The notes under the pieces were generated by a model. That model saw only the letters and a program-made list of their open reading frames with translations. It was not told the origin of the DNA and did not search any database. This document shows positions 25,886-56,487 of a stretch of DNA of 64,000 nucleotides, piece by piece. The first letter of the stretch is position 1. Every line of letters starts with the position of its first letter. The stretch spans positions 1 through 64,000 of the forward strand of contig MCFE01000179.1 of the NCBI GenBank assembly GCA_002104905.1. Direction: 5' to 3'. The stretch is from Basidiobolus meristosporus CBS 931.73 (lineage: Eukaryota; Fungi; Basidiobolomycota). The position numbers were made by a program, and so were the translations under genes.

Positions 25886-28431
25886 TTACTCCGGCCTGGC
25901 GCCATATAATGTTTCTTCCAGCTTGATGTCGATGTTATCGGTATCGAACAGGTTGAACTTGTCGGCCAAAAAGTTTACAATACGGAAGTAGATTCCCTCA
26001 GTGGCATTGCGAATGTTGATGCTATGATCCGAATCGGTGAATGATTGGAAGCGATAGCGATGAACCTTGGCCATGGTCAATGTATCCACCAGATTCAAGG
26101 AGTTCTGGAAGTGAACATTGTCGTCACCTGTGCCGTGGACCAGCAGGTAGTCTGCGTGATGGAATCCAGTCATGTTTCGGATTCCGGCCTCCTCGTAGCC
26201 CTCAGGGTTGTCCTGTGGTGTGGACATGTATCGCTCGGTGTACACCGAGTCATAGAGCTTCCAGTCGGTTACTGGTGCCACGGAAATACCGGCTTTGAAG
26301 ACCTGGGTGTCAGTCTCCAGCACCTTTCCGGTCATGTACCCGCCATACGACCAGCCCCAAATGGCGACATTCTCGGGGTTGACGTAGGGGAGCTGCTTCC
26401 AGTACTTCCCGGCATTCACCTGATCAATGGCCTCATACCGGCCAAGGTGGCCGCACACTGGTGAGCGGAATTTGCGGCCCTTGAATGCAGTACCACGTCC
26501 ATCCACCTTCACGATGATTACGTTCGACCATGGCGCAGCGGTGAGGAAGTCATCAAAGCCGAGTCGGAAGTTACGCGTGACATAGTTGGAGTTTGGCCCA
26601 CCGTAGACATGGAACAGTACGTTGTACTTATGGCGAGCCGACTCCTGGAAATCCGGTGGCAGAATCTCCATCGTGTTGAGCTCCACCCCGTCTACCGTAA
26701 TCTTCTTGTAGCGACGAGTGGAGACCTTGTAGTTCGCCAACACCTTTTGCAACGCGCTATTGTCCTCCAGCACTCTCTCAAACTTGCTATCGTCAATGGA
26801 GTACAGCTTCGACCATGGGATCTGGGGTCCAAGATACTTCAAGATGTAGTATCCCTTGTTGTTCGAGAAAGCCGCACTGAATGCCCCTCCTCTGACCTTC
26901 GGGGAGAGCTGTTTCTTCCTACCTCCGAAGCTCACGCTGAACACGTGTGGTTCGGTAGAGTCGATCTCGGTGCTTGTGTAGTACACTTGGCCTCGGACGG
27001 CGTCAACCCCAAGAATGCTGTTCACCTCCCATTCGCCCCGTGTGAGGTACACTGGCTTCTCCGCCGTGACGGGGGTGTAGAGTGCTAGATGCTTGTACCC
27101 GCTGTGCTCTACGATGTCGATATAGCCCCCTTCCTGGACCCCGGTGGTGCCGTTGGCTGGAACATAGCTTACCGCCTGATGCCAGTCCAGCCATCCTTCA
27201 TCCGTGGCCGCCTCGCGTCTGGTAAGCTTGGCCATGCCCGACTGTCCGTCCACAATGAAGATCCAATGCTTGTTCTGGATCCTGTTGCTCACCCGCACAA
27301 GCAAGAGGTCATCCTTCTCCGTGAGCCACTTCACCTCCCCAATGATCATCTCCGCTGGGTCCAGGCCATCAGTGGCTGGGAACTCCACTGCCAATGGTCC
27401 ATTCTCCGCGTTCAGATGGTAGATGTGCAGCGACACTGTTGGGTTGGGGTAGCCTGCCTTCGGATATCTTATGATCACCTCGCTTGGGTAAGAGTCACTC
27501 ATATTCCCCGGGTGATACACTGGCATGCGGAACTCCGGGACGGTTGTCTCGTTCAATCGCAGGAATGCGATTGCTTGGCTTCCAGGTGACCACCATTGTG
27601 CGTAATTGCTGCTGAATACCTCCTCCTCGTACACCCAATCCGGGACTCCATTGAACACCGTGGCCGTGCCATCCTTGGTCACTCTAACTTCGCTCTTGAG
27701 GTCGGTAACATACAGGTCGTTGTCCCGAACGAAGGACAGATGGGTACTGTCGGTGCTCCAAGTGGCATAGGTAATGTCGGGTTTGCCAGAATCTGTGGTC
27801 AACGGAGTGGTCTTCTTCGTCTCGATATCATATACCCAGTACTTGGCATAGTAGGAGTGACGCCATTGCTGGGTTATTCAGGCGACAATGGAAAAAAGAT
27901 CGAGGAATTTGGTTAGCAAGCAATTCTGAACAACTGAGATCTGAAGATTCCTCGCTTTAATAGGGCGATTTCATCTCGGTATTAATTAGCGTTCCTTACC
28001 TTTATGTGGTCGGTAGCGTAGAGCACTTGTTTCTTGTTAGGCGAAAGCTCATAGTCAAAGTAATCAAGCGGCTTGCTGTCAAGGCCAAGTACATCGGCTC
28101 CCTTGACGAGGGTCTGGGAGTTATTTGATAAGAGGTTGTTGAGGATTATATCTCCGTTAGTAGAGGTGATGTAGGTTCCATCCTCTCCGTTTAGGCCCTG
28201 TGTCCAGGTAAAACTGGGGGATTTAGCGGTGAGATTTTTGTTTCCGTTGATGAAATCGCTCCAAGTAAATACTAGTTTTTTGCCTTGAGTTTGCTCTGCA
28301 TGCGAAAAAGGGAGTTAGGGTTTCTGCTCGTCCTATTCAAGCATGGACCTGGATTTTATTTGCGTACCTTGGGCTTTAGAAGAACTAACAATGGCGATGA
28401 ATATCAAGGTCAGCTTGGTAGACCAGATCAT
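25886..28431 (-). CDS. DPP4: Secreted dipeptidyl peptidase IV (S9B), copy 1, 3 exons
   Basis: Signal peptide MIWSTKLTLIFIAIVSSSKA; DWVYEEE; catalytic GWSYGG, DDNVH and DSDH. Confidence 0.95.
25977..27888 (-). repeat. Left arm of a 1,912-bp near-identical inverted repeat (partner 54485-56396)
   Basis: Reverse complement of 54485-56396 with about ten substitutions counted by eye. The two ORF-track proteins are identical for ~590 aa. Confidence 0.97.
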
Positions 28432-29249
28432 TGTAGTGTTGACTGGGTGCTGGATGAGCTGGACTTGGCATGCAGTATACCTTAAATACTCGGGAGATGG
28501 AACACGCAGCGATAGATGTGGGAAAGCATCATACAGACCATAGTTGACGTTAGGGAATATTCGCGTTACACGTCTCCGAGCCACTCAAGATTCTCCCAGG
28601 TGAATGGTTGGCTGACGAAGTAGTAACCTTATTGCATATGCGGTAGCTTTCCTACAATATCCAGCTCACAAATCGGTACAAGTCCCGGCAGGTTCGTAAA
28701 CCACCGATTTTCACAGCCATCCATGAGTAATCACTCGACGCACGCATTTGGAAAAGCAGTCATTCAATTTCTTATTCCAGATCCGAGTTTTTTGGAGCGA
28801 CTAAAACTTGGCAAACCCAGTTAGCGGTGGGCATTTTTTTTTGGAACCATCCGACATTTCATGCGTGGGCATCGGTAGGGAAACAATCACGCGATATCCT
28901 CACTCGGCTCTATTAAGATAGCAACGATAAGAGTCTCGAGATATCACCGTTGATCATGGTTGCTTGGGATAAGTCCGTGAATCACATCTGACCATACATA
29001 AGCTTAAATGTGGGAACATCAATCGGTTCGCCGCCATGATGGAATCCAACCATCGTCACACAAGATTTCACTTGACGATAACCATAATACTGGATGCGAT
29101 GGAAGTCACACGCCTCGTTCGGAAGGTGCGACCAAGGCTCCGCTCTGTTTCGGCCGTATCCCAAAATAGCTCGCGCTCCAAGAAATTTCGCATTGGACTA
29201 CTGCCCGAGTCAACCTGAATCCCCGTCCACAAAAACAAGCTTCTATATC

Positions 29250-30600
29250 AAAGCAAAAGTTCCCTTTAGATCCATATCATCCTGATCCCAATTTAACCAT
29301 CTCCAGTACGATGTTGATCCCCAGCATCACCTAGTCCGGTTATTGGGGGTCCCGCCATCCCACCATATCAGGTTGCTAGTGAACAGCCACGGGAACGAGT
29401 GGAACTCCATGCTCACCCCGCAGCGACAAGCTCCTGTGCTCGGTCAAACTGGATTGTGCCGCATTAGAAAGGGGGATAAAGTGTGATGTGGTAATTCATA
29501 ATTTAGTCCAGAAGCAGCTCTCTGGTTGCACACACCACCTGACGCTGACGATGAGAATCCGGATGTATGGACTCCAGTCATGCAGACTAATCAATTAGAT
29601 GAGAGGCAACAGTGATGGAAATGGTTACATGTAGAGTGAATATTTCCCCATTGAGGTCTAACATGCAAATGTTTAGGGCTATACCATCTGACACACGCCC
29701 TCAATAGAATCCGTTTGGTTTAGCCCGATTCACCACCTCACTGGTTGCAGGCAGTGCAGGCCGACGAGGTAACCAGAGGATGTGTTTCGTGTGTGCCTGG
29801 CAACATCAGATAGCATTGTGATGATCTAAGGAAGATGGGCATCGTCTCCAGAGCCTCGCCAAACCACACCGTGGTGGTTGACGAGGCATTCCTAAGAGAT
29901 ATAGATTCATGTGCCGTTCTGGAATAAATCATCGAAATCTAGAAATTACCACCAGTTGGTGCCATCTCAATCCAACCGAGTGATTGGAATTGTCCGAGAG
30001 GCATCTGAAACCGAGGCTGCCAAATCTGCCGACCTGTCGCAAAAAGGTTGAGCAGGCACCTAATTGTATAGGTAGCAGATTCCCACACTGGAGCAAGTAT
30101 CCTTCTCCATGATGATGCTCTTGCAGATTGTATCCGTGTTGATCAAGGATGACTCAGCAGACACTCTACTCGATCTACCATCCAAAGCCATCTAAATCCG
30201 CTTCTTAGTGGATATTCCTTCTTCTAAATGCTCAGAGGTGGGCGATTTGCTCCCTCCTGATGGTATTGACCCGCATTGCGCTGAAGTTGCAACCCACTCC
30301 ATGCCCACGCCAGGTTGAGGCATCCATAAGGGTGGACGTTGTTGTGGGGATATCATTGCTGATCTTGGTTGTGATCGGGGAGCCCTAGGGACATGACCCA
30401 TGAATTTCTGGTATCAAGTATACTTGATGAGCATCTGGGATGAGATTACTACTGCAATCAACTGCCTGGTCAGCATCTATCAACATTTGGCCACCATTGT
30501 TGTGCATCAATAATGGTACAATGTTCCTTTGTTATTGCATTGGGAAATGTTGCATTCTGGCCTGTCATAGGGCTGCCTGAGCTCCTTCTTTGTAGCAATG
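29250..30600 (-). pseudogene. Possible degenerate DIRS-like (tyrosine-recombinase retrotransposon) RNase H / methyltransferase-domain relic
   Basis: Frameshifted fragments resembling DASxxGWG, I(Q)MAL..LINTD, DLF, VNPPW and LWxP in the expected order. There are many stops. Confidence 0.35.
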
Positions 30601-31489
30601 ATGTTACTCTCTCTACCTAGGATAGTGATTGCACATCAAACATTGTCCATTTAATCTGTCTCCAAAAAAAATTCTGGTTTCCAAGCTGTTACATCTATCC
30701 ATTTGGCCACTGCCTCCAATTGCCACATTAATGCTTTTGTATGGGCTGACATCATACTTGAGAATGATGGTGGCAGTGGTGTTATTATGGAAATTTGCTG
30801 GTCTTCTATTGGAGTTGGTGTGTTTACTATGTTCGCATCTGCAGATATCCTCAAATGGCTATCTGACTGAGAGCCCAAGGATCACATGTTATTATCTTTA
30901 GAGAGCACACTGCTGGCATGGCTTTTTTGATGTAGCTCCGCTTGTTGCACTTAATGTTAAAGCAAGGTGTTATCCAACAGTTCTTCTACTGCTGTTTACT
31001 ATAGGGCTTAGGTAGAAGCCAGAGGACTTTGCATGACTTTTTGCTGGCCCAAATACTGGAGAAAGGTAAACAAAAGGGGATATACAATCACATATGCAGC
31101 TGTACATGTTGCCACTGCCTTTATAAATGGCTATCATAGAGTACTGTCATCTGATCTTACATTCTGACAGGGGATTGACTAATATGCAAGAATGCTGCAA
31201 GCTCACATGAAAATTGACAGAATGCAATATAATACACTATATTGATATATATCAGCCTATTTGCCTCATGAGCAACATTACTTCAAGTCAGCATTGCAAG
31301 TGAAGAGAAAATAGACCATGAACATATTCTATCAGACCTCTCAGTAATCAGGCAAATAAACCACTCACAAAGGCCTACAAAGATCTTGGCCAATATTTAG
31401 TTACACAAGCCCTACTTGTATACTGATCAATTACTACAGTATTGGCATCCTATGGAAAATATCATACCTGGAATTCATCTGATAATCAG

Positions 31490-31770
31490 CAGTATTTGAC
31501 TAGTGGTCCACTGGTATTTTGCTGGTACTCAAATGATGCCTTTCCATCAAAGTTTCAGTTGCAGTTTTTGGGGGAAATTGTGAACAACTGATTGCCAGAT
31601 TTTGTACAAATGCTAGTTGGCCCAGTCTCTAAGTAGAAGATGTAGTTGCTTGTCTACCAAGTGGCTAGTACCTGAGATATCAAGAGTTGTCAATTTTGAG
31701 AAACTTGAAATTCAGCTAATATTACAAAACACTCTGCTAGCCATTTTTTATTTTTCTCTTTGGGATATAA
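31490..31770 (-). repeat. ~280-bp unclassified dispersed repeat, copy 1 (other copies 33160-33430 + and 35000-35280 +)
   Basis: Shared blocks ttccaagtttctcaaaa, actgggccaactggca and gaataccagca in all three copies. Confidence 0.7.
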
Positions 31771-31921
31771 TCTTACTGGCCATCATATACTGCACTTACA
31801 GCACCCTGCTGCACTTGCCAGCTAGCATAATCAAATATTGGAGAGTATGGGATGCCTTCTAGCTCACCTCAACCTTGGCAACATAGCCCATACACTGATA
31901 GCACTGAAAAATCCCCACAAA

Positions 31922-32269
31922 TAGCTGCAATAGTTTGGACAATATTGGAAGTGATCAAGAGTTCAAGTAGATTATATGACTTTCACTTAATGACTCATTG
32001 AATGTGAAAGTAATATATATACTTTCACATGATCTTGTCCAAAAAAGTGTGTAGAATATGCTCAGGAAGGTCTCAATAGCATGTTTGCAAAGTTTGGAGC
32101 TTTTTGGACAACTTCAAGAACTTTCATGGTCTGGGTGCCTGATGTTTTGGTCAAATTATATGACGTAAGTTCCAACAGAGAACTTGGTCAGAATTTGTCA
32201 AGACTTGTAGGTGATAATCTAAGCAACTAAGTTAGGTGAATATTTAGGCATATACCAATATTCTCAACA
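31922..32269 (-). repeat. Old solo LTR of the resident copia family
   Basis: Diverged match to the 42038-42386 LTR, ending ...ctcaaca. Confidence 0.75.
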
Positions 32270-32306
32270 CCAATGGGCTGCAAGTCTTTCTCCTTTCAAA
32301 TCTATT

Positions 32307-32654
32307 TGTTGTAAATATTCTTAATTCCACCCAAACAATCACCTAACTTGATCATTTAGATCATTACCTACAAATCTTATAAAATGCTGACCAAATTCCT
32401 TGTTGGTATTTACTTAGAATATGTTTACCAAAATATCAGGTACCCAGAACATGAGAATTCTCAAAGTTGTCCAAACAGCCCCAAACTTTGCACACATGCT
32501 CTTGAGAACTTTTTAAACCTACTCTACAGGCTTGACATGTCAGTATCATGTACAAGTATAAATATTACTTTTACATTCAACAGATCATCAAGTGAAAACC
32601 ACATAATCTGTTTATTCTCCCATTCACCTCCAATATCTCCAAAGCTCCTACAAG
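32307..32654 (+). repeat. Solo LTR of the resident copia family
   Basis: Starts TGTTG; contains the core ggtacccagaacatgagaattctcaaagttgtccaaacagcc and TATA agtataaat. Confidence 0.9.
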
Positions 32655-33159
32655 ACTGTCAACTGTTCTGTTTATGGAAAATACTATGGCCATGTGTTTG
32701 GAACTAATCTAAAAAGGGAATCCAGATCCTGTGTACCAGCTGTGATAGTACCAGTAAGCTCAAATCTTTGCCCCTTTTAAACACTTTATAGCAGAATCCT
32801 GACTGTGTTTTGGTGTCTGGACAGCCAAATATGGTAAGAAAATTAAGCTGGTTAGATGACCTTATTGCAGACTTCAATTGATACTCTAGTAGTACTATAA
32901 CCACCTTCATTATTTTGACAGGGTCAAATTAGCCAATACTTATAGTTGCTTTATTTGGCAAGAATCTTGATAGTGTAAGGTAGGCTTAAAGTATACCACT
33001 GATGGCATTGTGATGGATATATGGTAGGCAATTGCTGCTGCTAAATAACACAACCATACATATTTACCCAGTGTTAATGGACATTTCTTCTGCCTTTTAG
33101 CTACCAGCAAATCTAACTGTGATATCATGCATCTTAATTCTTTTACCCACAGTTACTCC

Positions 33160-33430
33160 CTAAGAGAAAAAGCTTAGAAAAGGCTGGTAAATACTGTCAT
33201 AATATCTGCCTAATTCCAACTTTCCCAAAACTTACAACAGTCATTATCCCAGGCACTACCCTCACAGTAGACAAGCTGATATCCTTTACACAGGGAGACT
33301 AGGCCAACTGGCACAACTAAAAAGTTTGGTAATCAGATTCTCATTACTACAATCAAACACTGCTACTGGAAATTTGGAGCAGAAGCACTAGCAGAATACC
33401 AGCAAAATAACATCAAAATATCAGCTCAAT
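33160..33430 (+). repeat. ~280-bp unclassified dispersed repeat, copy 2
   Basis: Aligns by eye with 35000-35280 and with the reverse complement of 31490-31770. Confidence 0.65.
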
Positions 33431-33599
33431 ACTGGCTAAATATTTAATGGGTTCCAACCATGATGTCATTCATATGATACTATAGAAATTCTACTCAGCA
33501 CCTGAATTAAAATGTCCTTGCCACCTGCTTATTGACCTCAACATATATGCACACCTAAAGAAACTTATACACTGATATCATTGCACCTTTACAGTATCT

Positions 33600-33860
33600 C
33601 AGAGCAATGGTTGCAAGGTAGGTATATATCTAGTATAGCTGGTAACATGTAAATATTGAAAGCATATGTTTGATAGCCACCACATTGGTCATTAATACAT
33701 CCTTAATATCCACAGACTACCTCTCAGTATCTGTCCAGTTCACTCCTTCTAATTGCAGAATTCTAGTCCTTTTTGTAGATGTTGGCCTGTTGTTTTGGAT
33801 ACATGTCACATTGAAAGGTCTTGAAGTTGGCTTCTGCCTAGAAGATACCTATTGGTCTTT
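33600..33860 (-). mobile_element. Short CACTA-family relic fragment
   Basis: Matches 61670-61870 (aacat...gcatatg..t..gccaccac; gaagttggctt). Confidence 0.45.
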
Positions 33861-34656: not shown

Positions 34657-34669
34657 AGTATGGCTATCA

Positions 34670-34953: not shown

Positions 34954-34999
34954 ATTGTGTAGCTGCTGGTCCATAGTCCTCTACTTGGTGCTTCTTAAC

Positions 35000-35895: not shown

Positions 35896-35900
35896 GTAGC

Positions 35901-39242: not shown

Positions 39243-39251
39243 GTAGCCACT

Positions 39252-42200
39252 TTACATGTCCTCATCAAGTTCTCCATTCAAAAATGCCGTTTTTACATCC
39301 ATTTGATGAATAAAAAACTTATATTTTGCGGCAATAGCCAAAATTAATCTGAGGGAATTAAACTTGGCTACCATTGCAAAGGTCTGAGTATAGTCAAGTC
39401 CTTTTGTTTGAGAGTATCCTTTGGCTACAAGTCTTGCTTTGTATCTTTCAATTGTACCATCAGCCTTGTATTTTGTCTTCAAGACCCATCTGCATCCAAT
39501 TGATTTTTGATTGATTGGTAATTTGACTAAGTCCCAAGTTTGATTTTCCATCAGGGCCTGATATTCCTCAGTCATTGCAGATCTCCAAAACTTTGTCTGA
39601 GGGCTACTTAGGGCCTCTTTTACAGTCTGGGGTTCATCAATATGGACTGAATAGGCATAGGCTAAGTTTGTACCCTCATTGATATAGTAATTTGAGCTAT
39701 TTCTTGTCCAATTGGATCTCCAGGCATTTGATACTGGAATGATCACTTCTGGGATATTCCTGGGCACTGATTCTGGCTGAACCATGGTTGTAGAGTCCTC
39801 TGGAGTGAAAAAAATTTATTGTTTTGCTCTGATTCAATCCTGACAATTGGTGGACTTGAGATCAAATTTTTGTCATCATCTGATGTCATTTTTTGTGAAA
39901 ATTTTGAATTTTCATCAAACAACACATCCCTGGACTTGATAGGCCTCTTTGCTTTGGTATTGTAGAGTCTGTATGCCTTACTCTCATTGTAGTAGCCCAA
40001 AAATATGCATTTTATACTTTTTGGCTCAAATTTTGACTGATTTCCGGCCAGTTTTTTGGCATATGCTGTACACCCAAATATTCTTAGATGTTCTGCACTT
40101 GGTCTGTATCTATACCATGCTTCAAATGAAGTAGAATCACAAAGTACTCTGCTATAAATCCTATTCTTAAGATATACACCAGTGGCAACTGATTCTGCCC
40201 AAAAATCATAGGATAATTTTTGATCATGGATCATAGATCTTGCCATATCAATTATTGATCTGTTAGCTTGTTCTGCTACTCCATTTTGCTGTGGGGAGTA
40301 TGGTACAGTAGTCTCTTGCTTTATCCCATGAATTTTGCAGAAGTGGATGAAGAGTTTTGAGGTATATTCTCCACCATTGTCAGAGCATATTTTTTTGATT
40401 TTTTCACCAGTTTCTCTCTCCACCATGGCTTTAAACTCCCTGAACTTAGACAGAGCTTCTTTCTTTCTCTCCATGAAGTAGACCCATGCAAATCTTGTAT
40501 AATCATCAATAAAAGTGATTAAATACCTCATCCTACCTAAGGATAAATTTTGCATTGGTCCACACAGATCTGAGTGAATTAGATCTAATTTTTTCTTAGT
40601 TTTGATTAACCCAGAGCTCTTGAATGGTTGTCTGGCTTGTTTCCCATATATGAAGGCTTCACAGTGCTCCAAATTAGCTGGGGGATCAATTTTCACTCCA
40701 GAAATTAGCTGATCTTTGATCATTTTGAGCAAATAATCAAAATTGATGAGCCCAAATCTCCTGTGCCAAAGCATTGGTGTTTCTTCATTCAAGTTACTTA
40801 TATTGGCTTCCAGATATGTTGGAATATAAGTCAACTTGTATAGATTTTGATCTCTGATGCCCAAAGCAATATGAGCACCATTTTGATCAGTGATCCTGCA
40901 TCCAGAATTGTCAAAACTGAAACTGAGTCCTTCTGCTGTGGCCTTGCTTACAGAGAGTAGGTTCTTGGCTATTTCTGGTACATAGAGTACTTCTTTAAAG
41001 GTCAGTGTATGGCTTCCTTCACTGCTTCTAAGGTTTACTTGGATAGTTCCTTCTCCCACTGCTTCAAGTGTTCTATTATCACCCATAAAAATCTTCTTAA
41101 TTGGAATTTCTTGATATTGGGTAAAAAGTTCTTTTTGGTGTGTAAAGTGTTAAGAAGCTCTAGAGTCAATATACCACATCTGAGAATCCTTTTTTGTGGT
41201 CATATTTAGTGCAGATATGAATAGTCTATCCTCAGTTGTTGCAGCATTTGCATATTCAGGCTTCTTTTGCTGATAATCTTGCGTTTTGAGACACCGGTCT
41301 GATGCGTGTCCTTTCCTTTTGCAGTAGTTGCAAAATAGGTTGCTGTTGCCTTTGTAGGGTCTTGAGTACCCCCTTTGTTGGTTATCATTGCTTATTAAAG
41401 CACTTTCTTCTTCCTTCTTATTGGCGCTTGATTTTCTAATTCTTCATCCAGGAGCCTTCCATATACGTAATTTAAGGTCAAATCTTCAGTTCTGGACTCT
41501 AGGGCTGATACAAGACCCTGAAACTCATCTGTCAGGCTATTCAGGATGGTAACAATCACATCCTCATCAGTAGTTGGTACACCAACAGATTCCATCTCAT
41601 CTACCAGCAGGGTAATTCTGTTAATTAGATTTTTCATTTCTTCTCCTGGCAGCATCTTTGTAGTAAAGAATTTTCATTTCAGATACATTTTCTTGGCAGC
41701 TGAACATCACTGGTAGGTGTCTTCCAATGCTTTCCAGGCATTCTTTGCCGTTTTTGCTCTTGAGCATTGAATTAGCAATTTGTCCTTGACATTAAGGCAA
41801 ATGCAGTTAAAGGCACTTTGTTCTTTCTTCTGGTACTTTAAGGCTTCCTCTCCCACGTTTTTAGGAGGGCATTCTTCTCCCATGACAATATCCCAAAGGC
41901 CTCTTTCTTGTAGCAGCATCTTCATCTTCACCTTCCACACTTGGTAGTTAGATCCATCCAACTTTTCAGCAGAGGGAAAAATTTCAGTAATAGCAGTAGT
42001 AGACATTGCAGAGAGTGACAGCTTGGGGCTCATAACCTGTTGTAAGAGTCTTGGAGATATTGGAAGTGATTGGGAGAACAAGTAGATTATGTGGTTTTCA
42101 CTTAATGATTTATTGAATGTAAAAGTAGTATTTATACTTTTACCTGGTCTTGGCATTACTAGCACATAGAATAGATTAAGGAAGGTCCCAAGAACATGTG

Positions 42201-43096: not shown

Positions 43097-46000
43097 TGTT
43101 GTAATAGTCTTGGTGATATCAGAAGTGATTGAGAGAACAAGTAGATTATGTGGTTTTCACTTTATGATTTATTGAATGTAAAAGTAGTACTTATTCTTTT
43201 ACATGGTCTTGGCTCAACAAGTACTTAGAATAGGTTAAAGAAGGTCCCAAAAGTATGTGTGCAAAGTTTGGGCTGTGTGGACAACTTAGATCATTACCTT
43301 CAAATCCTGGAGTATACTGACCAAGTTCCTTGAGATTTACTTTGAATATTTTCACCAAAATACCAGGTACACAGAACATGAAGATTCTCTAAGTGACCAA
43401 GTTAGGTGAATATTTGGGTGGAATACAAGTTTCTACAATACTCCCACTTAGCTAAATGCTCAAACAGACTAGTCCTAATTTTGCCCTAAGATATTCAAAC
43501 TTGTCTCTAGCTAATGGTTTTGCAAATATGTCCGCATTCATTTCATCAGAAGGACAGTAAGCTAAGCTAACTAAGCTATTTTTTAAAGCTACATGTATGA
43601 AATGATGTTTAATATCTATGTGCTTAGTTCTAGCATGAAAAGTCGGATATCTACCTAATTTTGAATATCCTTGGCTATCTTGAAACAAAGTAATAAGCAT
43701 TATTTGATATAGGCCTATATCTGTAAAAAGCTTTCTTCACCACATTGCTTCTTTTGGAGCTTCACAGGCTGCCATATACTCTACATTGGTGATGGAAAGT
43801 ACTATGGTTGGTTGCATTCTTGAACTCCATGAAATTACTCCTTGATAGTGTCATGATCACATGACAACCATGAACACCCATGCCAAGTTTCAGCTTCCCA
43901 GCTGAATTTCTAAGAGATTCCTTCTGGAACCTTCTACCACCTTCCAGAAAGTTCCTGACCATTCCAAACCATTGTTACACAATGGAACATTCCATGGAAG
44001 CTTTCCATCGTATTTTTTATAGTCCAGTACCATATATGGAAATACCAGGTCACATGACTTAGTCACATGATCAGGTGACCCAATCCATTTCCCCATCCTG
44101 TCTCAGTACCGTGTCATCTATGTCATTATCCCCAGCACCATTGCTGTGCCTCACCCCACAACCCCATTAGTATTAGCTAACATCTCTCGGCATCAATATA
44201 GCCAAAAAGTATATATAGTCCTATCCCCCCTTAAGTATTCCTCAGTCTGATAAACACAGGTCTTGAATAAACAGCCTTGCCTTGAATCCTGCCTTGCCTT
44301 GATGGTCCACACCTAAGTCCTTTCTTGCCGTGCCTAGCTTTTCCTCCTGCCTTGTGTCTATTCATAACAGATAGAGGAGAAAGGTGTATCCTGCGATTGA
44401 CCCTCTGTCTTCTAAGCTTCATCCCCAATCAGCATCAGAGTATCCTACAAGATCCTGTTCTAAATCCTTACAAGTGTATCTTAATGAGATATCAGCAGTT
44501 CCCTTTAGGTATCTAAAAATCTACTTAACAGCTGCAATATGATCAGATCCTTAGTTCTGATGATGCTGGCTGACAACTCCCACTGAATATGAGATATATG
44601 GACATGTTCCAATCAAGATATACATTAGACTGCCGGCCTTAGATTGATAAGGAAAGTCAGGGCTTTCAGATGACACCAAGCTCCCTTGATTTGGTTGAGT
44701 TTTGACCAAGTCAAGGCTTGTCCCCATTGGGGTAGCTGCCAGTTTACAGTCTTGCATTTGGTACTTCATTAGTATATCTTGAATATACTTGGACTGGGTC
44801 AGGTTGATAGTTTGAGTACTTCTGTCTATAGAGAACTTTATCCTTAAGTAGTAACTGAGTTCTCCTAAATTGGACATCTTGAACTCTTTAGATAGCCTGG
44901 ATTTAGTCTCTTCCAATGTTGCTAGGTTATTTGTGGCTATAATAAGACCATCCACATATAGAGCTAATAGAACTGGATTTGCTCTATCTGACTTAGAGTA
45001 TATACTATAGTCAGCATAACTCCTTTTGAAACTCAAAGATTCCAAATAAGAATCTATATTGCAATTCCAGGCTCTTGGAGATTGTTGAGTCCATATTGAG
45101 ACTTTTTAAGCGTTCAGACTAGATGGGGGTTATCTTGGTCAGCAAACCAATCAGGCTGGTCCATGTACATGTCCTCATCAAGTTCTCCATTCAGAAATGT
45201 AGCTTTTACATCCATTTGATGTATAAAAAGCTTATATTTGTCTGCAATAGCCAATATTAATCTGATGTAATTAAACTTTGCTACTGGTGCAAAGGTCTCA
45301 GTGTAGTTAAGTCCTTTTGTTTGAGAGTATCCTTTGGCCACAAGTCTTGCTTTGTGTCTTTCAACTGTAGCATCAGCCTTATACTTTGTCTTAAAGACCC
45401 AGCTGCATCCAATTGATATTTGGTTGATTGGCAATTTGACTAAGTCCCAAGTTTAATTTGCTTCAGAGACTGATATTCCTCAGTTGTTGCAGATCTCCAA
45501 AACCTTGTCTGAGGGCTATTTAGGGCCTCTTTCACAGTCTGGGACTCATCAATATGATCTGAATAGGCATAGGCTAAGTTTGTATGCTCATTGATATACT
45601 AGTTTGGGCTATATCTAGTCTGGTTGGATCTCTGGGCATTTGATACTGGAATGATCACTTCTAGGAAATTCCTGGGCATAAATTCAGGCTGAACCATGAT
45701 TGTAGAGCCCTCTGGAGAGAAAAAGTTCTCATTGGTTTACTCTGATTCTATCCTGACTATTGGTGGACTTGAGATCAAATTTTTGCCATCATCTGATATC
45801 ATTTTTTGTGAAAATTTTGAGTTTTCATCAAGCAACACATCCCTGAACTTGATTAGCCTCTTTAGTTTGATATTGTAGCGCCTGTATGCCTTGCTCTTAT
45901 TGCAGTAGCCCAATATTAAGCATTCTACACTTTTTGGCTCAAATTTTAACTGATATCTGGGCAGTTTGCTGGCATATGCTGTGCACCCAAGTATTCTTAG

Positions 46001-47943
46001 ATGTTCTGCACCTGGTCTGTGTTCATACCATGCTTCAAATGGAGTAGAATCACAAAGTACTCTGCTATAAATCCTATTTTTAAGGTATACAGCTGTGGAA
46101 ACCAATTCTGCCCAAAAATCATAGGATAATTTTGATCATGGATCATGGATCTTGCCATATCAATAGTTAATCTGTTTGCATGTTGTGCTACTCCATTTTG
46201 CTGTGGGGACTATGTTACAGTAGTCTCTTGCTTTATCCAATGAATCTTGCAGAAGTGAGTGAAGAGTATTGTGGTATAATATCCACTATTGTCAGTGTGT
46301 ATTTTCTAGATTTTCTCACCAGTTTCACTTGCCACCATGGCTTTAAGCTCCCTGAGCTTAAACAGAGCTTCTTCCTTTCTCTCCATGAGGTAGACCCATG
46401 TGTATCTTGTACAATCATCATTAAAAGTGATCAAATACCTCATCCTGCCTAACAATAAATTTTGCATAAGTCCACACAGATCTGAGTGAATTTAATCTAA
46501 TTTTTTCCTGGTTTTGATTAACCCAGAGCTCTTGAACAATTGTCTGGCTTGTTTCCCATATATGCAGGCTTCACAGTGCTTCAAATCAGCTGGGGGATCA
46601 GCTTTTACTCCAGAAATTAGCTGATCTTTGATCATTTTGCACAAATACTCAAAATTGATGAGCCCAAATCTCCTGTGCCAACGCATTGGTGTTTCTTCAA
46701 TTGAGTTACCTACATTGGCTCCCAGATATTATGGAATATAAATCAAAACTGAAACTGAGTCCTTCTGCTGTGGCCTTGTTTACAGATAGTATGTTCTGGG
46801 CTATTTCTGGTACATAGGGTACTTCTTTAAAGGTCAGTGTATGGCATCCTTCACTGCTTCTAAGGTTTACTAGGATAGTTCCTTCTCCCACTGCATCAAG
46901 TGTTCTATTGTCACCCATGCAAACCTTCTTAATTGGAATATCTTGGTATAAGGTAAAAAGTTCTTCTGGGTGCGTAAAGTCAATGTACCACATCTGAGAA
47001 TCCTTGCTTATGGTCCTATCTAGTGCAAATATAAGTAGTCTATCTTCAGTTGTTGCAGTATTTCCATATTCAGGCTTTTTTTGCCAATTATCTCCCTTTT
47101 TGAGACACTGGTCTGATGTGTGTCCTTCCCTTTTACAGTAGTTGCAAAACAGGTTGCTGTTGCTGTTGTAGGGTCTTGGGTACCTCCTTTGCTTGTTATC
47201 ATGGGTGATTAAAGCATTTTTTTCTTCCTTCTTGTTGGTGCTTTATTTTCTTAATTCTTCATCCAGGAGCCTTCCATATACATAGCATAAGGTCAAATCT
47301 TCAGTTCTGGACTCTAGGGCTGATACATGGCCCTGAAACATGTCTGTCAGGCTATTCAGGATGGTTACTATCACATCCCTATCAGTAGTTGGCATGCCCA
47401 GAGATTCCATCTCATTCATCAGCAGGGTAATTCTGTAAATTAGATCTTTCATTTCATTGCCTGGCACCATCTTTATAGTAAGGAATTTTCACCTAAGATA
47501 CATTTTCTTGGTAATCAAGCATGGCTGGTAGGTGTCCTCTAATACATTCCAGTCATTCTTTGCCCTTGTTGCTCTTGAGCATTGAATTAGCAATTTGTCT
47601 TTGATATTGAGGCAAATGCAGTTAAAGTTACTTTGTTCTTTCTTCTGGTACCTTAAGGCTTCCTCTCCCATGTTTTTAAGAGGGCATTCTTCTGCCATGG
47701 CAATATCCCAAATGCCTGTTTCTTGTTGCAGCATCTTCATCTTCACCTTCTACACTTAGTAGTTAGATCCATCCAACTCTTCAGCAGTGGGAAAAATTCC
47801 AGTAATAGCAGTAGTAGGCATTGCAGAGATTGACAGCTTGGGGCTCATAGCCTGTAGTAAGAGTCTTGGAGATATTGGAAGTGATTGGGAGAACAAGTAG
47901 ACTATGTGGTTTTCACTTAGTAGAGTGTGGATACAGTAGTAGC
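43097..47943 (-). mobile_element. Degenerate Ty1/copia element: 3' LTR 43097-43440, RNase H, RT, integrase, protease, gag, truncated 5' LTR stub 47853-47920
   Basis: RTKHIDIKHHF and ADIFAKPL RNase H; RT and integrase ORF fragments; PPT TAAGTGGGAG; many stops and deletions. Confidence 0.92.
43790..44369 (-). repeat. ~580-bp foreign insert in the copia RNase H, probably a solo LTR of another family
   Basis: Interrupts the GYTFL...EYMAA segment that is contiguous in the 35.9-kb copy. Begins TGTTATG on the minus strand; no clean TSD. Confidence 0.55.
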
Positions 47944-47949
47944 CAAGTT

Positions 47950-49400
47950 CTATGTGTTAGCTTGACATTTGTAGCTTAGGTAACCATGTCACATCACAAA
48001 CTCTTTGAATACAAGCTGCTGATGTGCCAACTTACCATTGGTGATCTGCTTCTGGATAAACATTCCTACAGTGTCAACATATGACTCTCAATGGAAAGCT
48101 CCTCCTCCTAAAGAATCCTTCTATCTTGACTGCACGCAGCTTTTGATTAGTTCCATATTCTGACTGATGGCTTATAGATTGAGTGCTATCTCTAATACAG
48201 ATGATAGTATGACCTTTGACATTGCAGCCATTTACTATTATCCTGCTGGAAATCATAAGAAGTTCATCCAGTAGGGGATATAGATATCTCTCCAGGTTGG
48301 ATGGTAATTCAGGCCCAGATTCCAGTGAGACTACAACCAGATATTTGCCTGGATACCTTAAGATTGGTGGCAGATTTATGTTGATGAGAATCAGTGGCCA
48401 GCAGGATTTGCTGGTAGAATAGTTGTGTGCAGAGAGTTCCCCAGGTGCAAAGGCAAAGGCATGGTCATACATACCTTCAAGGTAGCCCTTGCTTCCTAGT
48501 CATTTGTAGCATTTGCCATCAAATATATTGGTAATCTTTGTCCTTGATTGAAACTGAGTGGGGTACTCTATAGCTTCACTATATTTGCTGTACTCCATGA
48601 GCTTCTTTAGGTAGGTTATTACTGGAATATATCCAGAGTGTGAGCAATGTTTTCCTCCTATAGAGGTGGGTTACTGACAAGTTAGGCACCATGCAATGGT
48701 GACATTTTCTGATGTGAATGCCATGCACTGTTAGCACATGCTGGTATCAGAACTGTGTCTGGGTCATATGTTGCCAGCTACATGATGGTTGTCTATTTGT
48801 AATATATACATGGTATGTTGTATCCCATAATAATTTTGGCAAGAAGTAGCAGTAAATCCTCAGAGCCCCCATTACTGATATTGGTGGAAACATGCCATTT
48901 CTCTAGCTACAACATTATATCATTCATCAGTAGATGGACTACTGGGCTCACATGGCTACACCAGGTGTCCTTGACATTCTTTCCAATGAGTGTTGTCTTA
49001 TTGAATATTGGGACTTTGCTAGGCTCATGCAGGGTACTGTTGTCAGGTGATATAGGCTCACAATCTATCATTAAGCCTTCTTCTTAAGAGCTGTTGCTCT
49101 GCAGGTCACATTCAGAAGGCGGATGTTAGCTAGAAGGTAACACAAATTCAGCTGTTGCAGTTTGTGCAAGGTGACAAGTGTAGCTAGATACCATTATAGA
49201 AGTATCAAGTGGCTGGCACAATATTGGTGATACAGTAGCACCTGTGGAATGCTCAAATATGACTTGTGTGGCAAAACACTGGCTACAATCCTTGTAATAC
49301 TTCCTATGCTGTCTCTGTGCTTCATGGCTGAGAGGGTTGTTACAATAGCCATGTAGTTCTTTTCCCTTCACTTACAGTCCTGAGTCAAAGTACTCTGTTG
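47950..49400 (-). mobile_element. CACTA/EnSpm (tnp2-type) transposase relic, N-terminal and central part
   Basis: C..CMAF...C..C..P, YIP, IFDGK.Y, and SCWPLILININLPP..RY...GPELPSNLERYLYPLLDEL, which fits the Transposase_21 motif. Confidence 0.78.
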
Positions 49401-52400
49401 ATGAGGCAAACAGATTTACACTGAGCAATGTAAATCTATTACGTCATTTTTTGTCAATACTCATGTGAATTCAAGACAGTCTTGTGTTTACAAAATTGCA
49501 TCTACATGAATGTAAGATTCAATGATAACCCACTACAGTGAGCATTATGAATAGGCTTGTGGTGCCATATATGCATGCATACATAGCAATGTTTCCCCTT
49601 GGTTTGACTAGTATCCATATACTTGCCACCAAAAAATACAGCAAAATTGTGTGGTTCTCAACTAAGCTACACAGCTGACAGCAGCAGAAGTATAGTTGGA
49701 CAACAGCTTGCTTTGACATTCAGTGCAATAAGCAGGGCTACATCCAGAAAAGGCTGTGTTGACAGTGTACCCACTAAAAATAATAATGCAGACTTCTCAA
49801 GTGCTCAGTCAAGTAGGCAATTGAGAATCTCTGCAGAGTAACAACCTGACCATAATGCTCAGGCAAATGAGAATGTAGCAGACATAGTACCTCCAGTGGA
49901 GGACTAGTAAGTTGCTGTCTTAACATCAGCACCATCAGTATTACCAAGTATGCTGTTGGCATATGCCAAACCATTAATGAGGCAAATAAGTGCAGACCCT
50001 AATAAGATATATGCAATGGCCTAGAGAAGTCAGGAAGTTGTCCAGAGACAGGATAAGCAGTTAATATATGCCAAGCAGTCAATAGTCAAGGCAGAGAATG
50101 CAGTGTATTTGCTGCAAAGAAGGAGCCCATATAGCTCAGTGTTGCAGCTAAGATTTAAGAAATTTGCCAATACACCAGCAAAGGAGTACTGTGAAGTCTT
50201 TGAAGCACAACAACAGTGCACAAAGATAAAGCCTGCAAAAGAATATACCACAGCATGGGAGGAAAGAACAACGCATATATACCAAAGCCCAATAATCAAT
50301 GAATATTTGAGATCTCTGAAGCCATTGAGTGTAATGATGAAGAGTGTGCTAATATACAAGAGGCTGTACCAAGTCTAGCATGCCATCCCCTCAAGGCTGG
50401 TAAACATGTGACCATCAGAAACTCAAGGTCAGGCAGAATGTACTTGACTTGCTCCACATGTATTACCCTAGATTCTAAAAAGTAAAAGGTATTGGCCAGT
50501 ATTGGTAGGCTGAGAGAGTTTCTCAAAAGATGCAGAAACTACAAAAGGCAGAAGTACAAATGCTTCACAGCTAACAACCAGAGGCTTCCTCAACAGCCCA
50601 TTAAAAGCAGGGCCAAAAGCTCTAAACAAGCAGCAAAAAATGTGTGGTAGCCAGAAGAGTGCTGATAAGGGACAGGCTGGAAGAAACAGATGCACCAGTG
50701 CAACTTGCATCAAGGAAAAAGGATAGTATTTATCAAGAGGTACTGAGTCAAAGTAGTAGTGGAGGGCCTGGCAGTGATAAAAATCATCAGGTTTCTCAGG
50801 AGCCTGTCACAATTAGGGCTGAAAGCTCAAAGCAAGTGGCAAAGAAATGTCAGGTTGCCTGAAGCTTGCCAGTGAGGAACAAGCACTCAGCAGTTAGTGC
50901 ATCCATGCAGCACTCATCAAGGGGAAGAGGTAGATTAGTACAGGAAGCGCTTGTACAAGGTAGCAGCAATAAAGGAAAAGGTAAAGGGAAAAAAGTCTAC
51001 ACAAACCAGAGGCCGGAAAGCATGATAAAGAAACTGCCATTCTCAGTAATTGAAGCCAGCAGCCCAGAACAGTTTGAATCCTGTAATAGCTAAGAAGAAT
51101 TGCTAAGAAGACAATGACTGTTTTCTCAAGAGTTGGATGCATTGTCAGTCATGTTACATTACGGTGAGGTAGATGGGTTTGCAGAGTAAGGTAATCTCAC
51201 CACAACAGCTTCCACATCCTCTATTGTAGAAAAAGTGGAGATCCTACTGACAGACAAAGCAACAACATCAAGAATTCCAAGGACAATCATAATTCCTACA
51301 GTGGAATATTCAGGCAATAATAGACACTGCAAAAGGTTGCAGCACTTCCTCAAGTGCAATACTAAAGAAAATGTACTGGAACATTGCAGAGATTTATTTC
51401 AAAGGCTGGCAGATTATGTATTAGACCTTGCAGTGCTGGCCAAAGAACAGAACATATGGGAACCAGTGAATGAACAATGGCATAAAGCTTTAGAGTTCCA
51501 GCTGAAGTTATGGAAACAGGGCATATTGGCAGAAATACTTATTGAATGATGGATTTTAATGGACTTACTTGTTGAGTGTGAGGCTGGGCTTAATGTTAGT
51601 CTTGGATATAAAAACTTGTACAGGTCAGTAAAATTGGCAATAGAGTTATAATTGAAGAGTGAATAGAAATAAGCTAATATGTATGCAAGAAAAGTAAGAA
51701 TATTGGTTGAGTCAGGAAGTAAGAAGTATGAAAAAGAGGCAATAGCCAATAAATGTACTCAAATGTAGGAGGTGATTGAAAGTCTGGGATCTGAAAGTGA
51801 GAAAACTGGCAGAGTAGCAATCAAAAGTTACTTATATATTGCTGTGATGAGAAATTTTAATCAAATTTTTTGTGAAATGTGAGGTTCTATTTTTGAACAG
51901 TCTTTGCATACTGTCCATACCTCTGAGTTACAGGATTTAAACTTTGTGGTGGCCTTTGACAGGATCATCACAGTTATATTTCATAGGGAAAGGACACTCC
52001 CAGGAGACTATGCTGGCAGCCAACCAACTTTAGAAGTACTGTGCATAAGGAATATTGAGTTTAGATAACTGGTGATGCATTAGATTCTTTGCCAGGCTTG
52101 CTCTTCACATACAAGTATATCTTTGTGTCTCTATATCAGTACTCAACAAAACTGAGGGCACCAATAAAGTCAGTAGTGAATAATTGTAAAAGTGAAGTAA
52201 CAGCATATTATAGTACACAAATAAAATAGATAATTACATGTCTGGAATCAGGAAATGATAATAGAGGCAGGGAGTGGGTCAAAAGTAAAAAAGGGACAAT
52301 TGAGAGTGCAGGCTTTACTAATACTTGCAATGATTTTTGCTTTGCAAGGCTCAAAGACAATGAAAGGATCAGGTTCACTATCTAAGTTAGCTGACTTATG

Positions 52401-52899
52401 ATTGTTTTGCACAAATGTAATAAGTTAATATATCCATATCTCCTATACAAAAGTGCTGTATCTGTTCATTTATTTGCAAAAGTTCTGTATAGATTGTAGG
52501 CTCTTATGTGTTGCTTGTGAATCAATTAGCTGTTCAAGTATTTGTGCAAAGCCACCTTTGTTGATACTTATGCTTACAATTATAGTTTACTGTCCACCTG
52601 CATTGATTGTTCTGTTGTCTACCACAAAAGCACATCATTTGGAATATCTTGATATTAGTTTAGATATTACTTTCAATATGTAAATGGCTGAGATGCTCCA
52701 GAGTATGTATACCATGCCTAAGAGCCCTTTTTTCTGGCTGTACTGAGTTCAGATTTGAGCTGCTTATGTCTGGCAGTTGCAACATATATACATTTATATC
52801 ATTCAAGTGGAAGATATCACTTTTTTAAACACAAATCTAATCAGTGTCCCTCACTAAGATTGCCTCTTTCTTTGAAGGAATTTAGGTATCCCTGTTTGT

Positions 52900-53586
52900 T
52901 GTTATTATGCATATTATAGTATTGACTACTTCATTCTGATTGCAGCTTGATCATTTCAATTCTTTTTACAAATGCCTTCAGTTAACACAATCTACAAGCA
53001 TATACTCAATTCTGAACTCTAGGGCTTACACAAGTCCCTGAAATTGGCTTGTCAGAGTATACAAGATGGTTACTCTCATAGCTTCATTAGTAGCTAGCAT
53101 TCCTACTGATTTCATGCCAATAACCAATTCAGCCACTCTGCTAATTGAGTTGTCTGTACTTCTGCTGGCAGTGACTTGGTAGTCAAGATTCTGTGTTTTG
53201 GATAGATTTTTGCAGCAGCTGAAAATGATTGATAGGGCTTAAAGCTTGTTGTAAGAGTTTTGGATAAGCTGGGAGTGATTAGCAGAGAAAGTACATTACA
53301 TAGTTTTCACTCAATGAATTTGAATATAAAAGCAATGCTTATAGTTTAAGATAGTGTTGCCAAGATAAACACCTAGAATATGCCTAGGAAGATCACCAGC
53401 GCATGTGTGCAAAGTTTGGTAAACTTTGGTCAACATGGGTGTTTTTCATGTCATGGGTATCTGATAATTTGGAAAAAAATTCCAAGTCCAACAAGAAATT
53501 CGGGCTAAATTCTTTAAGATTTGTAGGCTCTGAATTAAGTGACCAAGATAATAGAATAATTAGGTGTAAATACAAAATTTACAACA
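52900..53586 (-). mobile_element. Old copia relic: LTR 53247-53586 plus degenerate PBS and deleted gag
   Basis: LTR ends TGTTG/ACAACA; gag-like LVSPRVQN/RVTILYSL remnants at 53010-53160. Confidence 0.7.
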
Positions 53587-53961
53587 AAAGGCCAGGAAAT
53601 ATCAGCAATTGAATCGCGGATCAGAATGCAGTGTATCAAAGTAACTTCATAGCAGATTCGTCAGTACGTCATCTGATTCAGCGACATTTGAAACATGAAG
53701 GGACAATAAGATTCTAACACAAATGGGTTAGTGTTGGCCGCATTCAACTATATTTAATTGCTTCAGGAACCTCCTTCCTGGGTAAATCCTTGATTATGCA
53801 AAGACTGGTGATGATGATTGAATAATAGCAATACAAGTCACAAGAGAATCCTCTGCACACGTGATACTGATCAGGAGCTCAACTTAGGGAACCCTCAATT
53901 ACGTCGGGCTAGATAGTATAAAAGAAGATTCACTGAGCTAAAAAATAACCATTTTTGATAT

Positions 53962-56487
53962 ATGATGTTCAAGACATCAAGCAGCCTATTCATAGGTTTC
54001 CTTCTTCTATATGTGATAGATGTGGGTGGCGACCAAATAGCATGTAAGTGTAGCTAGCTCTGTGCACTGCCCAGCTTCCTGCGCTGACCTCATTCGTAGG
54101 GATATTGGATAAAAATCCGTCGCCTGGAAAATTGATATATACTTGGAGTGACTTTGTCAATGGAAATAGAAATCTCACCGCTAAATCCCCCAGTTTTACC
54201 TGGACACAAGGTTTAAACGGAGAGGATGGAGCCTACATCACCTCTACTAACGGAGATATTGTCCTCAACAACCTCTTATCAAATAACTCCCAGACTCTTG
54301 TTAGAGGAACCGATGTTACTGACCCGAATGGTAAACCACTAAATCAGTTCCGATATGCACTTTCACCTAACAAGAAGAAAGTTCTCTACGCAACTGACTA
54401 CAAAAAGGTAAAGAATCGTCGCCATACCGAGAAAAAACACCCTGCTATGGCTTACTAACGAAGTTTCTCTTTGTTCTTTGTTTATTGTCACCTGAATAAC
54501 CCAGCAATGGCGTCACTCCTACTATGCCAAGTACTGGGTATATGATATCGAGACGAAGAAGACCACTCCGTTGACCACAGATTCTGGCAAACCCGACATC
54601 ACCTATGCCACTTGGAGCACCGACAGTACCCATCTGTCCTTCGTTCGGGACAACGACCTGTATGTTACCGACCTCAAGAGCGAAGTTAGAGTGACCAAGG
54701 ATGGCACGGCCACGGTGTTCAATGGAGTCCCGGATTGGGTGTACGAGGAGGAGGTATTCAGCAGCAATTACGCACAATGGTGGTCACCTGGAAGCCAAGC
54801 AATCGCATTCCTGCGATTGAACGAGACAACCGTCCCGGAGTTCCGCATGCCAGTGTATCACCCGGGGAATATGAGTGACTCTTACCCAAGCGAGGTGATC
54901 ATAAGATATCCGAAGGCAGGCTACCCCAACCCAACAGTGTCGCTGCACATCTACCATCTGAACGCGGAGAATGGACCATTGGCAGTGGAGTTCCCAGCCA
55001 CTGATGGCCTGGACCCAGCGGAGATGATCATTGGGGAGGTGAAGTGGCTCACGGAGAAGGATGACCTCTTGCTTGTGCGGGTGAGCAACAGGATCCAGAA
55101 CAAGCATTGGATCTTCATTGTGGACGGACAGTCGGGCATGGCCAAGCTTACCAGACGCGAGGCGGCCACGGATGAAGGATGGCTGGACTGGCATCAGGCG
55201 GTAAGCTATGTCCCAGCCAACGGCACCACCGGGGTCCAGGAAGGGGGCTATATCGACATCGTAGAGCACAGCGGGTACAAGCATCTAGCACTCTACACCC
55301 CCGTCACGGCGGAGAAGCCAGTGTACCTCACACGGGGCGAATGGGAGGTGAACAGCATTCTTGGGGTTGACGCCGTCCGAGGCCAAGTGTACTACACAAG
55401 CACCGAGATCGACTCTACCGAACCACACGTGTTCAGCGTGAGCTTCGGAGGTAGGAAGAAGCAGCTCTCCCCGAAGGTCAGAGGAGGGGCATTCAGTGCG
55501 GCCTTCTCGAACAACAAGGGATACTACATCTTGAAGTATCTTGGACCCCAGATCCCATGGTCGAAGCTGTACTCCATTGACGATAGCAAGTTTGAGAGAG
55601 TGCTGGAGGACAATAGCGCGTTGCAAAAGGTGTTGGCGAACTACAAGGTCTCCACCCGTCGCTACAAGAAGATTACGGTAGACGGGGTGGAGCTCAACAC
55701 GATGGAGATTCTGCCACCGGATTTCCAGGAGTCGGCTCGCCATAAGTACAACGTACTGTTCCATGTCTACGGTGGGCCAAACTCCAACTATGTCACGCGT
55801 AACTTCCGACTCGGCTTTGATGACTTCCTCACCGCTGCGCCATGGTCGAACGTAATCATCGTGAAGGTGGATGGACGTGGTACTGCATTCAAGGGCCGCA
55901 AATTCCGCTCACCAGTGTGCGGCCACCTTGGCCGGTATGAGGCCATTGATCAGGTGAATGCCGGGAAGTACTGGAAGCAGCTCCCCTACGTCAACCCCGA
56001 GAATGTCGCCATTTGGGGCTGGTCGTATGGCGGGTACATGACCGGAAAGGTGCTGGAGACTGACACCCAAGTCTTCAAAGCCGGTATTTCCGTGGCACCA
56101 GTAACCGACTGGAAGCTCTATGACTCGGTGTACACCGAGCGATACATGTCCACACCACAGGACAACCCTGAGGGCTACGAGGAGGCCGGAATCCGAAACA
56201 TGACTGGATTCCATCACGCAGACTACCTGCTGGTCCACGGCACAGGTGACGACAATGTCCACTTCCAGAACTCCTTGAATCTGGTAGATGCATTGACCAT
56301 GGCCAAGGTTCATCGCTATCGCTTCCAACCATTCACCGATTCGGATCATAGCATCAACATTCGCAATGCCACTGAGGGAATCTACTTCCGTATTGTCAGC
56401 TTCCTGGCTGAAAGGTTCCAATTGTTCCCCGACACACCCAATATTGACCTTCAAGTGGAGAGGGCGTTATATGCGGGCAAATCATAG
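53962..56487 (+). CDS. DPP4: Secreted dipeptidyl peptidase IV (S9B), copy 2, 3 exons
   Basis: Distinct signal exon MMFKTSSSLFIGFLLLYVIDVGG; same catalytic GWSYGG/DDNVH/DSDH; different C-terminal tail. Confidence 0.95.
54485..56396 (+). repeat. Right arm of the 1,912-bp inverted repeat
   Basis: Reverse complement of 25977-27888. Confidence 0.97.

Follow-up and report, generated by a model that had tools for sequence, protein, structure and literature searches.

Two inverted DPP4 paralogues of Basidiobolus meristosporus share a near-identical core that was probably homogenised by gene conversion

The 64,000-nucleotide stretch of Basidiobolus meristosporus CBS 931.73 analysed here (assembly GCA_002104905.1, contig MCFE01000179.1, positions 1 to 64,000, hereafter the window) carries two complete three-exon DPP4 (S9B) genes arranged head to head, ORX95337 on the minus strand (copy 1) and ORX95338 on the plus strand (copy 2). 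The two genes are almost identical over 1.9 kb of their length and strongly divergent at both ends. They are very probably old inverted paralogues whose core has been homogenised by interlocus (non-allelic) gene conversion. The genes and the two arms of the core are laid out as follows.

25886..28431, minus strand: DPP4 copy 1 (ORX95337, 764 aa), exons 28431-28368, 28271-28000 and 27868-25886
53965..56487, plus strand: DPP4 copy 2 (ORX95338, 789 aa), exons 53965-54043, 54100-54407 and 54505-56487
25977..27888, minus strand: left arm of the homogenised core, made up of the 3'-terminal 20 nt of intron 2 and of exon 3 without its final 29 codons and the stop codon
54485..56396, plus strand: right arm of the homogenised core, placed by base-by-base comparison with the left arm

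A repeat search of the window returned the inverted pair 25946-27896 / 54477-56427 (1951 nt, 99% complementary, 26,580 nt apart), and a 1.9-kb inverted match within 64 kb is far beyond chance. Within the strict arms, 1901 of 1912 positions are identical (99.4%), and all 11 differences (at 26044, 26083, 26087, 26114, 26303, 26717, 26870, 26912, 27161, 27773 and 27883) are transitions. Specifically, eight are third-position synonymous changes, two replace a residue (T/A at 26083 and S/P at 26044) and one is intronic; their sequence contexts are mixed (CpA 3, CpC 4, CpT 3, CpG 1). At both arm ends, ungapped identity drops from 98-100% to the random level (16-40%) inside one 50-nt step, so that the identical tract takes in the final 20-28 nt of intron 2 and leaves 29 codons between its other end and the stop codon. 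A preliminary description of this DNA had reported a 1.9-kb near-identical inverted core with about ten substitutions, nearly all transitions and mostly synonymous, starting within intron 2 and stopping about 30 codons before the stop; we found the same core again, with the counts and limits given here.

Outside the arms, the two copies diverge steeply. The divergence between copy 1 and copy 2 at synonymous (dS) and nonsynonymous (dN) sites, calculated per segment by the Nei-Gojobori method (NG86), is listed below; pS denotes the proportion of synonymous sites that differ.

Core, 631 codons: 99.4% identity, dS 0.022, dN 0.001
28110..28256, minus strand (partner 54151-54297), 5' part of exon 2, 147 nt, 54 codons: 91% identity, dS ~0.44, dN 0.03
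28000..28109, minus strand (partner 54298-54407), 3' part of exon 2 (divergence island), 110 nt, 35 codons: 68% identity, dS ~1.7, dN 0.25
25889..25976, minus strand (partner 56397-56484), C-terminal tail, 30 codons: 59% identity, pS 0.99 (saturated), dN 0.33

The tails are the most divergent part, with a transition-to-transversion ratio of 22:13 and additional indels. The 147-nt stretch of exon 2 carries 12 transitions and one transversion, a ratio that shows a general transition bias, and short high-depth Illumina contigs fall in this same stretch. The 5' flanks, exon 1 and intron 1 cannot be aligned between the copies (~47%), and neither can most of intron 2 or the 3' flanks. Because the identity covers 20-28 nt of intron 2 as well as synonymous sites, selection at the protein level cannot explain it. 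The earlier view of an old pair with a recently homogenised core is therefore borne out by the segment-wise values, in which a core dS of 0.022 stands beside saturation in the 3' part of exon 2 and in the tails. The strong divergence that had been described for the promoters, exon 1, intron 1 and the tails likewise holds; that of "much of exon 2" holds for the 3' 110 nt only, the 5' 147 nt being 91% identical.

In Basidiobolus ranarum, one copy of the orthologue was found, on the 2.9-kb contig JASJQH010002848.1. It is ~75% identical to both B. meristosporus cores (pS 0.79), which are equidistant from it, and the identity between the paralogue cores is therefore far younger than the split of the two species. 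At the DNA level its tail matches that of copy 1 only, with a dN of 0.28 to copy 1 and 0.44 to copy 2 and with saturated synonymous sites. By sequence comparison, the paralogues are thus estimated to be, outside the converted tract, at least as diverged as the two species, and their cores to have separated very recently. When the 11 core differences were polarised with B. ranarum, copy 2 carried the ancestral base at six sites, copy 1 at three and neither at two, which gives no donor signal. Additionally, the GC content at third codon positions of exon 3 is 0.70 in both copies, higher than in neighbouring genes (0.55-0.65) and in the B. ranarum orthologue (0.47); judged against these references rather than a species-wide baseline, the excess is suggestive and may be a trace of GC-biased conversion.

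Two further observations concern the B. ranarum data. The contig JASJQH010002848.1 opens with the final 39 nt of exon 2 and continues unbroken through core and tail, and that assembly therefore apparently does not represent the core by a collapsed repeat. A search of other Basidiobolus data with residues 1-135 of copy 2 gave no match, a result that the length window of the search makes uninformative.

We infer the repair step and the reason for the tract boundaries from this pattern. A break in one copy would have been repaired with the other copy, at a distance of 26.6 kb, as template, and ~1.9 kb would have been overwritten; single conversion tracts of this size are not unusual in fungi. The tract would halt on both sides where the paralogues are too different (59-68% identity) for pairing, and because it stops at old divergence, the N-terminal module, comprising the promoter, the signal-peptide exon, most of exon 2 and intron 2, and the 30-residue tail with its 3' flank would remain distinct. 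The 91% stretch of exon 2 may have been left by an older conversion, or by a homogenised region that was formerly larger and has since shrunk. In line with this, the three tiers of divergence (0.6%, 9% and >30%) imply either that conversion took place at least twice or that the homogenised region contracted from its edges. The candidate gene conversion of the preliminary description is thus in keeping with a tract of 99.4% identity that ends sharply inside coding sequence of 59-68% identity and includes part of an intron.

Both copies are predicted to encode full DPP4-type peptidases, the sequence matches to solved structures being decisive. In Pfam, DPPIV_N (PF00930, 9e-94) is followed by Peptidase_S9 (PF00326, ~1e-48; 8e-49 in copy 1) in each protein, and both match solved DPP4 structures, such as 6l8q and 1n1m, with an E value of 1e-113. 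Alignment to 6l8q shows that the Ser of GWSYGG, the catalytic Asp and His, the Glu-Glu motif DWVYEEE and the Arg of KQWRHSY are kept in both copies, in agreement with the DPP4 label given earlier. The conserved motifs GWSYGG, GTgDDNVHF, DsDHsI and DWVYEEE are all located in the identical core, of which the left arm alone encodes a 638-residue open reading frame (ORF). In contrast, the N-terminus is MIWSTKLTLIFIAIVSSSKAQ in copy 1 and MFKTSSSLFIGFLLLYVIDVGG in copy 2, and the tails end in ...NFLADKFNLFDTDNIDIKLEETLYGARPE and ...SFLAERFQLFPDTPNIDLQVERALYAGKS, respectively. Both N-termini have a basic residue, a hydrophobic stretch of 9-12 residues and small residues at -3/-1; they resemble signal peptides, and the peptidase is probably secreted. 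The Basidiobolus proteins therefore share with DPP4 of MEROPS family S9B (6l8q, 1n1m) the DPPIV_N propeller, the S9 hydrolase domain and the catalytic and anchoring residues. In place of a type II membrane anchor, however, the Basidiobolus copies have short N-termini resembling cleavable signal peptides, and they extend ~20 residues beyond the mammalian C-terminus. The tails that diverge between the copies correspond to the last helix and this extension.

The arrangement of the two genes raises the question of inversion. As transcription of the two genes runs outwards, the spacer contains their promoters together with exons 1 and 2, and a crossover between the arms would therefore swap the 5' modules between the two tails; the gene models agree with the geometry proposed earlier, and the translation of our rebuilt copy-2 model equals the deposited ORX95338 exactly. 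Besides conversion, the spacer could thus invert via arm crossover at an appreciable rate, in culture or among isolates, giving genes that join the N-terminal module of copy 1 to the C-terminal tail of copy 2 (N1-C2) and the reverse (N2-C1), which we regard as unlikely. The geometry fits, with 1.9-kb inverted arms of 99.4% identity placed 26.6 kb apart and the 5' modules inside the spacer; at least two conversion tracts of different age would imply repeated interaction between the copies; and a precedent exists in a 24-kb Saccharomyces region between homogenised inverted paralogues (PMC9731477). On the other hand, the PacBio-based contig has one orientation, and short-read contigs cannot bridge a 1.9-kb arm. 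The yeast region itself showed no flip in ~53,800 mitoses and 950 meioses, so even a real orientation polymorphism would not act as a switch, and a regulated switch is far less probable than the polymorphism.

Transcript data point the same way. Run X3 comes from the same study as the Illumina runs X1 and X2 described below; its kind was guessed as DNA, yet its contigs are spliced, the 67-nt intron of a neighbouring peptidase M24 gene being removed. It contains one 2,436-nt contig (depth 76) with the copy-2 base at all ten exonic differences. Compared with copy 1, 89 letters of this contig replace the divergent end of exon 2 and intron 2, and in size they correspond to the end of copy-2 exon 2 without the intron; at its two ends the contig extends into the start of copy-2 exon 2 and into the copy-2 tail. 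The contig is therefore a spliced copy-2 mRNA in the assembled form N2-core2-C2. Since it joins all ten copy-2 alleles to the exon 2 and the tail of copy 2, it confirms the phase that the assembly gives to the copy-specific alleles. Chimeric N1-C2 or N2-C1 transcripts, which the preliminary description had proposed as a check, were absent from X3: the single transcript contig recovered is parental, with its alleles in phase and no branch or chimera. The unique tail, 3' flank and exon 1 of copy 1 have no contig in X3, but coverage holes prove nothing, and copy 1 is to be called not detected rather than silent. In this one RNA-like run, expression appears to differ between the copies.

A related discrepancy touches the copy-1 gene model. 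The deposited ORX95337 is eight residues short (DTLTMAKV is reduced to V) at window positions ~26070-26093, the gap being a 24-nt GT..AG "mini-intron" that spans the copy-specific sites 26083 and 26087. The same residues are kept in the copy-2 model and in the B. ranarum protein. The mini-intron is probably an annotation artefact that arose when copy-2 transcripts were mapped onto copy 1.

Raw reads bear on whether the repeat was created by the assembler, that is, whether the cores are truly divergent, or belong to a single gene, and were homogenised or duplicated in the consensus. The assembly is based on long reads, in which repeats can be mis-polished, and both copies lie on one contig. We mapped Logan contigs of the Illumina runs X1 and X2, which represent one sample, over 24500-30400; their kind was guessed as DNA, with which 17-kb single-depth contigs across intergenic sequence agree. 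The contigs stop at 25977-26006 and 27853-27882, corresponding to one k-mer overlap across each arm edge, and word depth is 175-182 in the arm compared with 103-106 (~104) in the unique, single-depth flanks. This ~1.7-fold increase is close to the ~1.75-1.9-fold expected for two copies that differ at few sites, and both alleles at 26912 are present across X1 and X2. The breaks at the arm edges together with the depth therefore indicate that the repeat is not an assembly artefact, and they speak against the collapsed or mis-polished assembly that had been considered earlier. Additionally, the X3 contig independently has every copy-2 allele, and 11 copy-specific differences survived polishing. 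An artefact is accordingly very improbable.

The remaining spacer sequence bears on a recent origin of the whole pair. Most of the spacer is a block almost free of CpG, with an observed/expected ratio (o/e) far below that of the genes, and it contains the following features.

~30376 to 53400-53615, no strand: CpG-free block of ~23 kb, CpG o/e 0.03-0.06, GC 35-41%, with an excess of TpG/CpA
39252-42165 and 44551-46105: Ty1/copia gag, integrase and reverse transcriptase remnants within the block
48074-48472: tnp2 transposase remnant within the block

The block holds several decayed Ty1/copia copies, 80-92% alike, with repeats resembling long terminal repeats. Repeat-induced point mutation (RIP) introduces a CpA-to-TpA bias into repeats, with TpA/ApT above 0.89 and (CpA+TpG)/(ApC+GpT) below 1.03. 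The block has a TpA/ApT of 0.86, a (CpA+TpG)/(ApC+GpT) of 1.51 and a CpG o/e of 0.06, values on the other side of the RIP thresholds, and its pattern looks like the decay of methylated CpG rather than RIP. The arms and the gene ends have a CpG o/e of 0.8 and normal dinucleotide content. That RIP produced the differences, all of them transitions, or the divergent ends is ruled out by these dinucleotide indices and by the mixed contexts of the differences.

The block edge lies ~1.95 kb from the ATG of copy 1 and 350-565 bp from that of copy 2, in good agreement with the ~2 kb and ~350 bp given before. From these distances it had been suggested that silencing could differ between the copies; expression does appear to differ, but nearness to the block does not silence copy 2, which is the copy expressed in X3.

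That the whole gene was duplicated recently and then decayed fast and locally at its ends, for instance by mutation leaking from the methylated or RIP-like block, or with the core held by purifying selection, is the least probable explanation of all: the 5' ends do face the heavily mutated transposon block, but the tails face away from it and yet diverge most (59%, 22:13, indels), the block shows CpG-specific loss rather than RIP while the gene ends keep a CpG o/e of 0.8, 99.4% identity at synonymous and intronic sites is beyond what selection can maintain, and the mixed contexts of the 11 differences, the segment-wise dS and the substitution spectra contradict it.

Several points weigh against interlocus conversion as the account of the core. 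It draws on one genome of the species, and on the pattern within that genome rather than on a tree of species and paralogues. Runs X1 and X2 may come from the assembly's own sample, in which case they confirm the raw data rather than represent a second isolate, and the summed word depth of their contigs is only a rough guide to copy number. Synonymous sites compared with B. ranarum are saturated (pS 0.79-0.99), so that the order of duplication and speciation cannot be dated from them, and B. ranarum yielded a single copy, on a contig of 2.9 kb. Overall, gene conversion, an ordinary process, is well supported here, and inversion is not supported at present.

The rest of the window comprises neighbouring genes and further unusual sequence. 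An aminopeptidase-P-like gene (AMP_N + Peptidase_M24; 23455-24874, minus strand) is found 1 kb beyond the 3' end of copy 1, in the same orientation, and two X-Pro-specific peptidases are therefore neighbours. Coverage of this gene in run X3 is good (contig depth 845), and its 67-nt GT..AG intron (24675-24741) is confirmed by a spliced X3 contig. Downstream of copy 2, the ORF 58476-59252 on the minus strand carries a class I S-adenosylmethionine-dependent methyltransferase domain (Methyltransf_23/25/11). Between the copy-1 ATG and the CpG-free block, ~2 kb of sequence (28432-30376) are unique and unannotated, with a CpG o/e of 0.6-0.75, no X3 coverage and no ORF longer than 66 aa. ORX95337 and ORX95338 are consecutive accessions, and the deposit therefore has no gene model between the two genes. 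A second nearly CpG-free block extends from ~60000 to 64000, again with an o/e of 0.03-0.06, an excess of TpG/CpA and indices that do not indicate RIP. Both blocks are sharp-edged, with genes of normal CpG content right at their edges, a pattern consistent with long-term CpG methylation confined to the transposon blocks.

As a case of concerted evolution the locus is clean and well bounded, and it belongs to an early-diverging fungus and occasional human pathogen. The two genes are kept identical over the catalytic body of the peptidase that they encode, which is probably secreted, whereas their promoters, leaders and tails evolve apart. For annotators and phylogeneticists this calls for caution, as these paralogues seem young when judged by the core and ancient when judged by the ends. 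Additionally, a perfect-looking 1.9-kb repeat is neither CpG-depleted nor RIP-mutated despite adjoining a CpG-free transposon block. If inversion were to occur, the 30-residue tails and 3' flanks would be exchanged between otherwise identical enzymes or, equivalently, promoters and leaders would be swapped, with uncertain effect. It is improbable that B. meristosporus cells or isolates differ in the orientation of the spacer, with the core as a joint at which modules and tails are reshuffled into four DPP4 genes from two loci and with expression depending on module placement.

Among known systems, mating-type switching in Ogataea polymorpha relies on inverted repeats that flank an invertible 19-kb segment beside repressive chromatin; the flip is induced by starvation and moves the MAT genes in or out of centromeric silencing (PMC5720833, PMC4238957). 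The Basidiobolus locus resembles it in having inverted repeats around a segment, here next to a CpG-free block, but it contains no MAT genes, and the copy nearest the block is the expressed one.

A closer parallel is found on Saccharomyces chromosome XIV, where two inverted paralogous gene pairs, homogenised by conversion, flank a 24-kb region that occurs in both orientations across strains and species, and where the 4-kb inverted repeats with YNL018C/YNL034W have let the region invert repeatedly on an evolutionary time scale (PMC9731477). Both loci have inverted paralogous repeats kept near-identical by repeated conversion, around spacers of similar size (24 kb in yeast, 26.6 kb in Basidiobolus). 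In yeast, however, whole genes lie inside the 4-kb repeat and no chimeras result, whereas the Basidiobolus repeat is internal to the genes, and an inversion would recombine N-terminal and C-terminal modules. Furthermore, both orientations are documented in many yeast strains with a spacer of 15 genes, whereas in Basidiobolus one orientation is seen and the spacer consists of dead transposons.

The Basidiobolus pair most closely resembles known interlocus conversion and concerted evolution. It shares with these systems (PMC3924818, PMC3966223, PMC3924832) a sharp-ended, near-identical tract in old paralogues, together with homogenised synonymous and intron sites, copies linked over tens of kb and divergent islands beside the tract. 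Nothing essential differs from those systems; the present case adds a Zoopagomycota fungus and a pair inverted around a transposon block. Unlike general cases of conversion, its tract spans almost the whole catalytic part of the peptidase while both termini differ.

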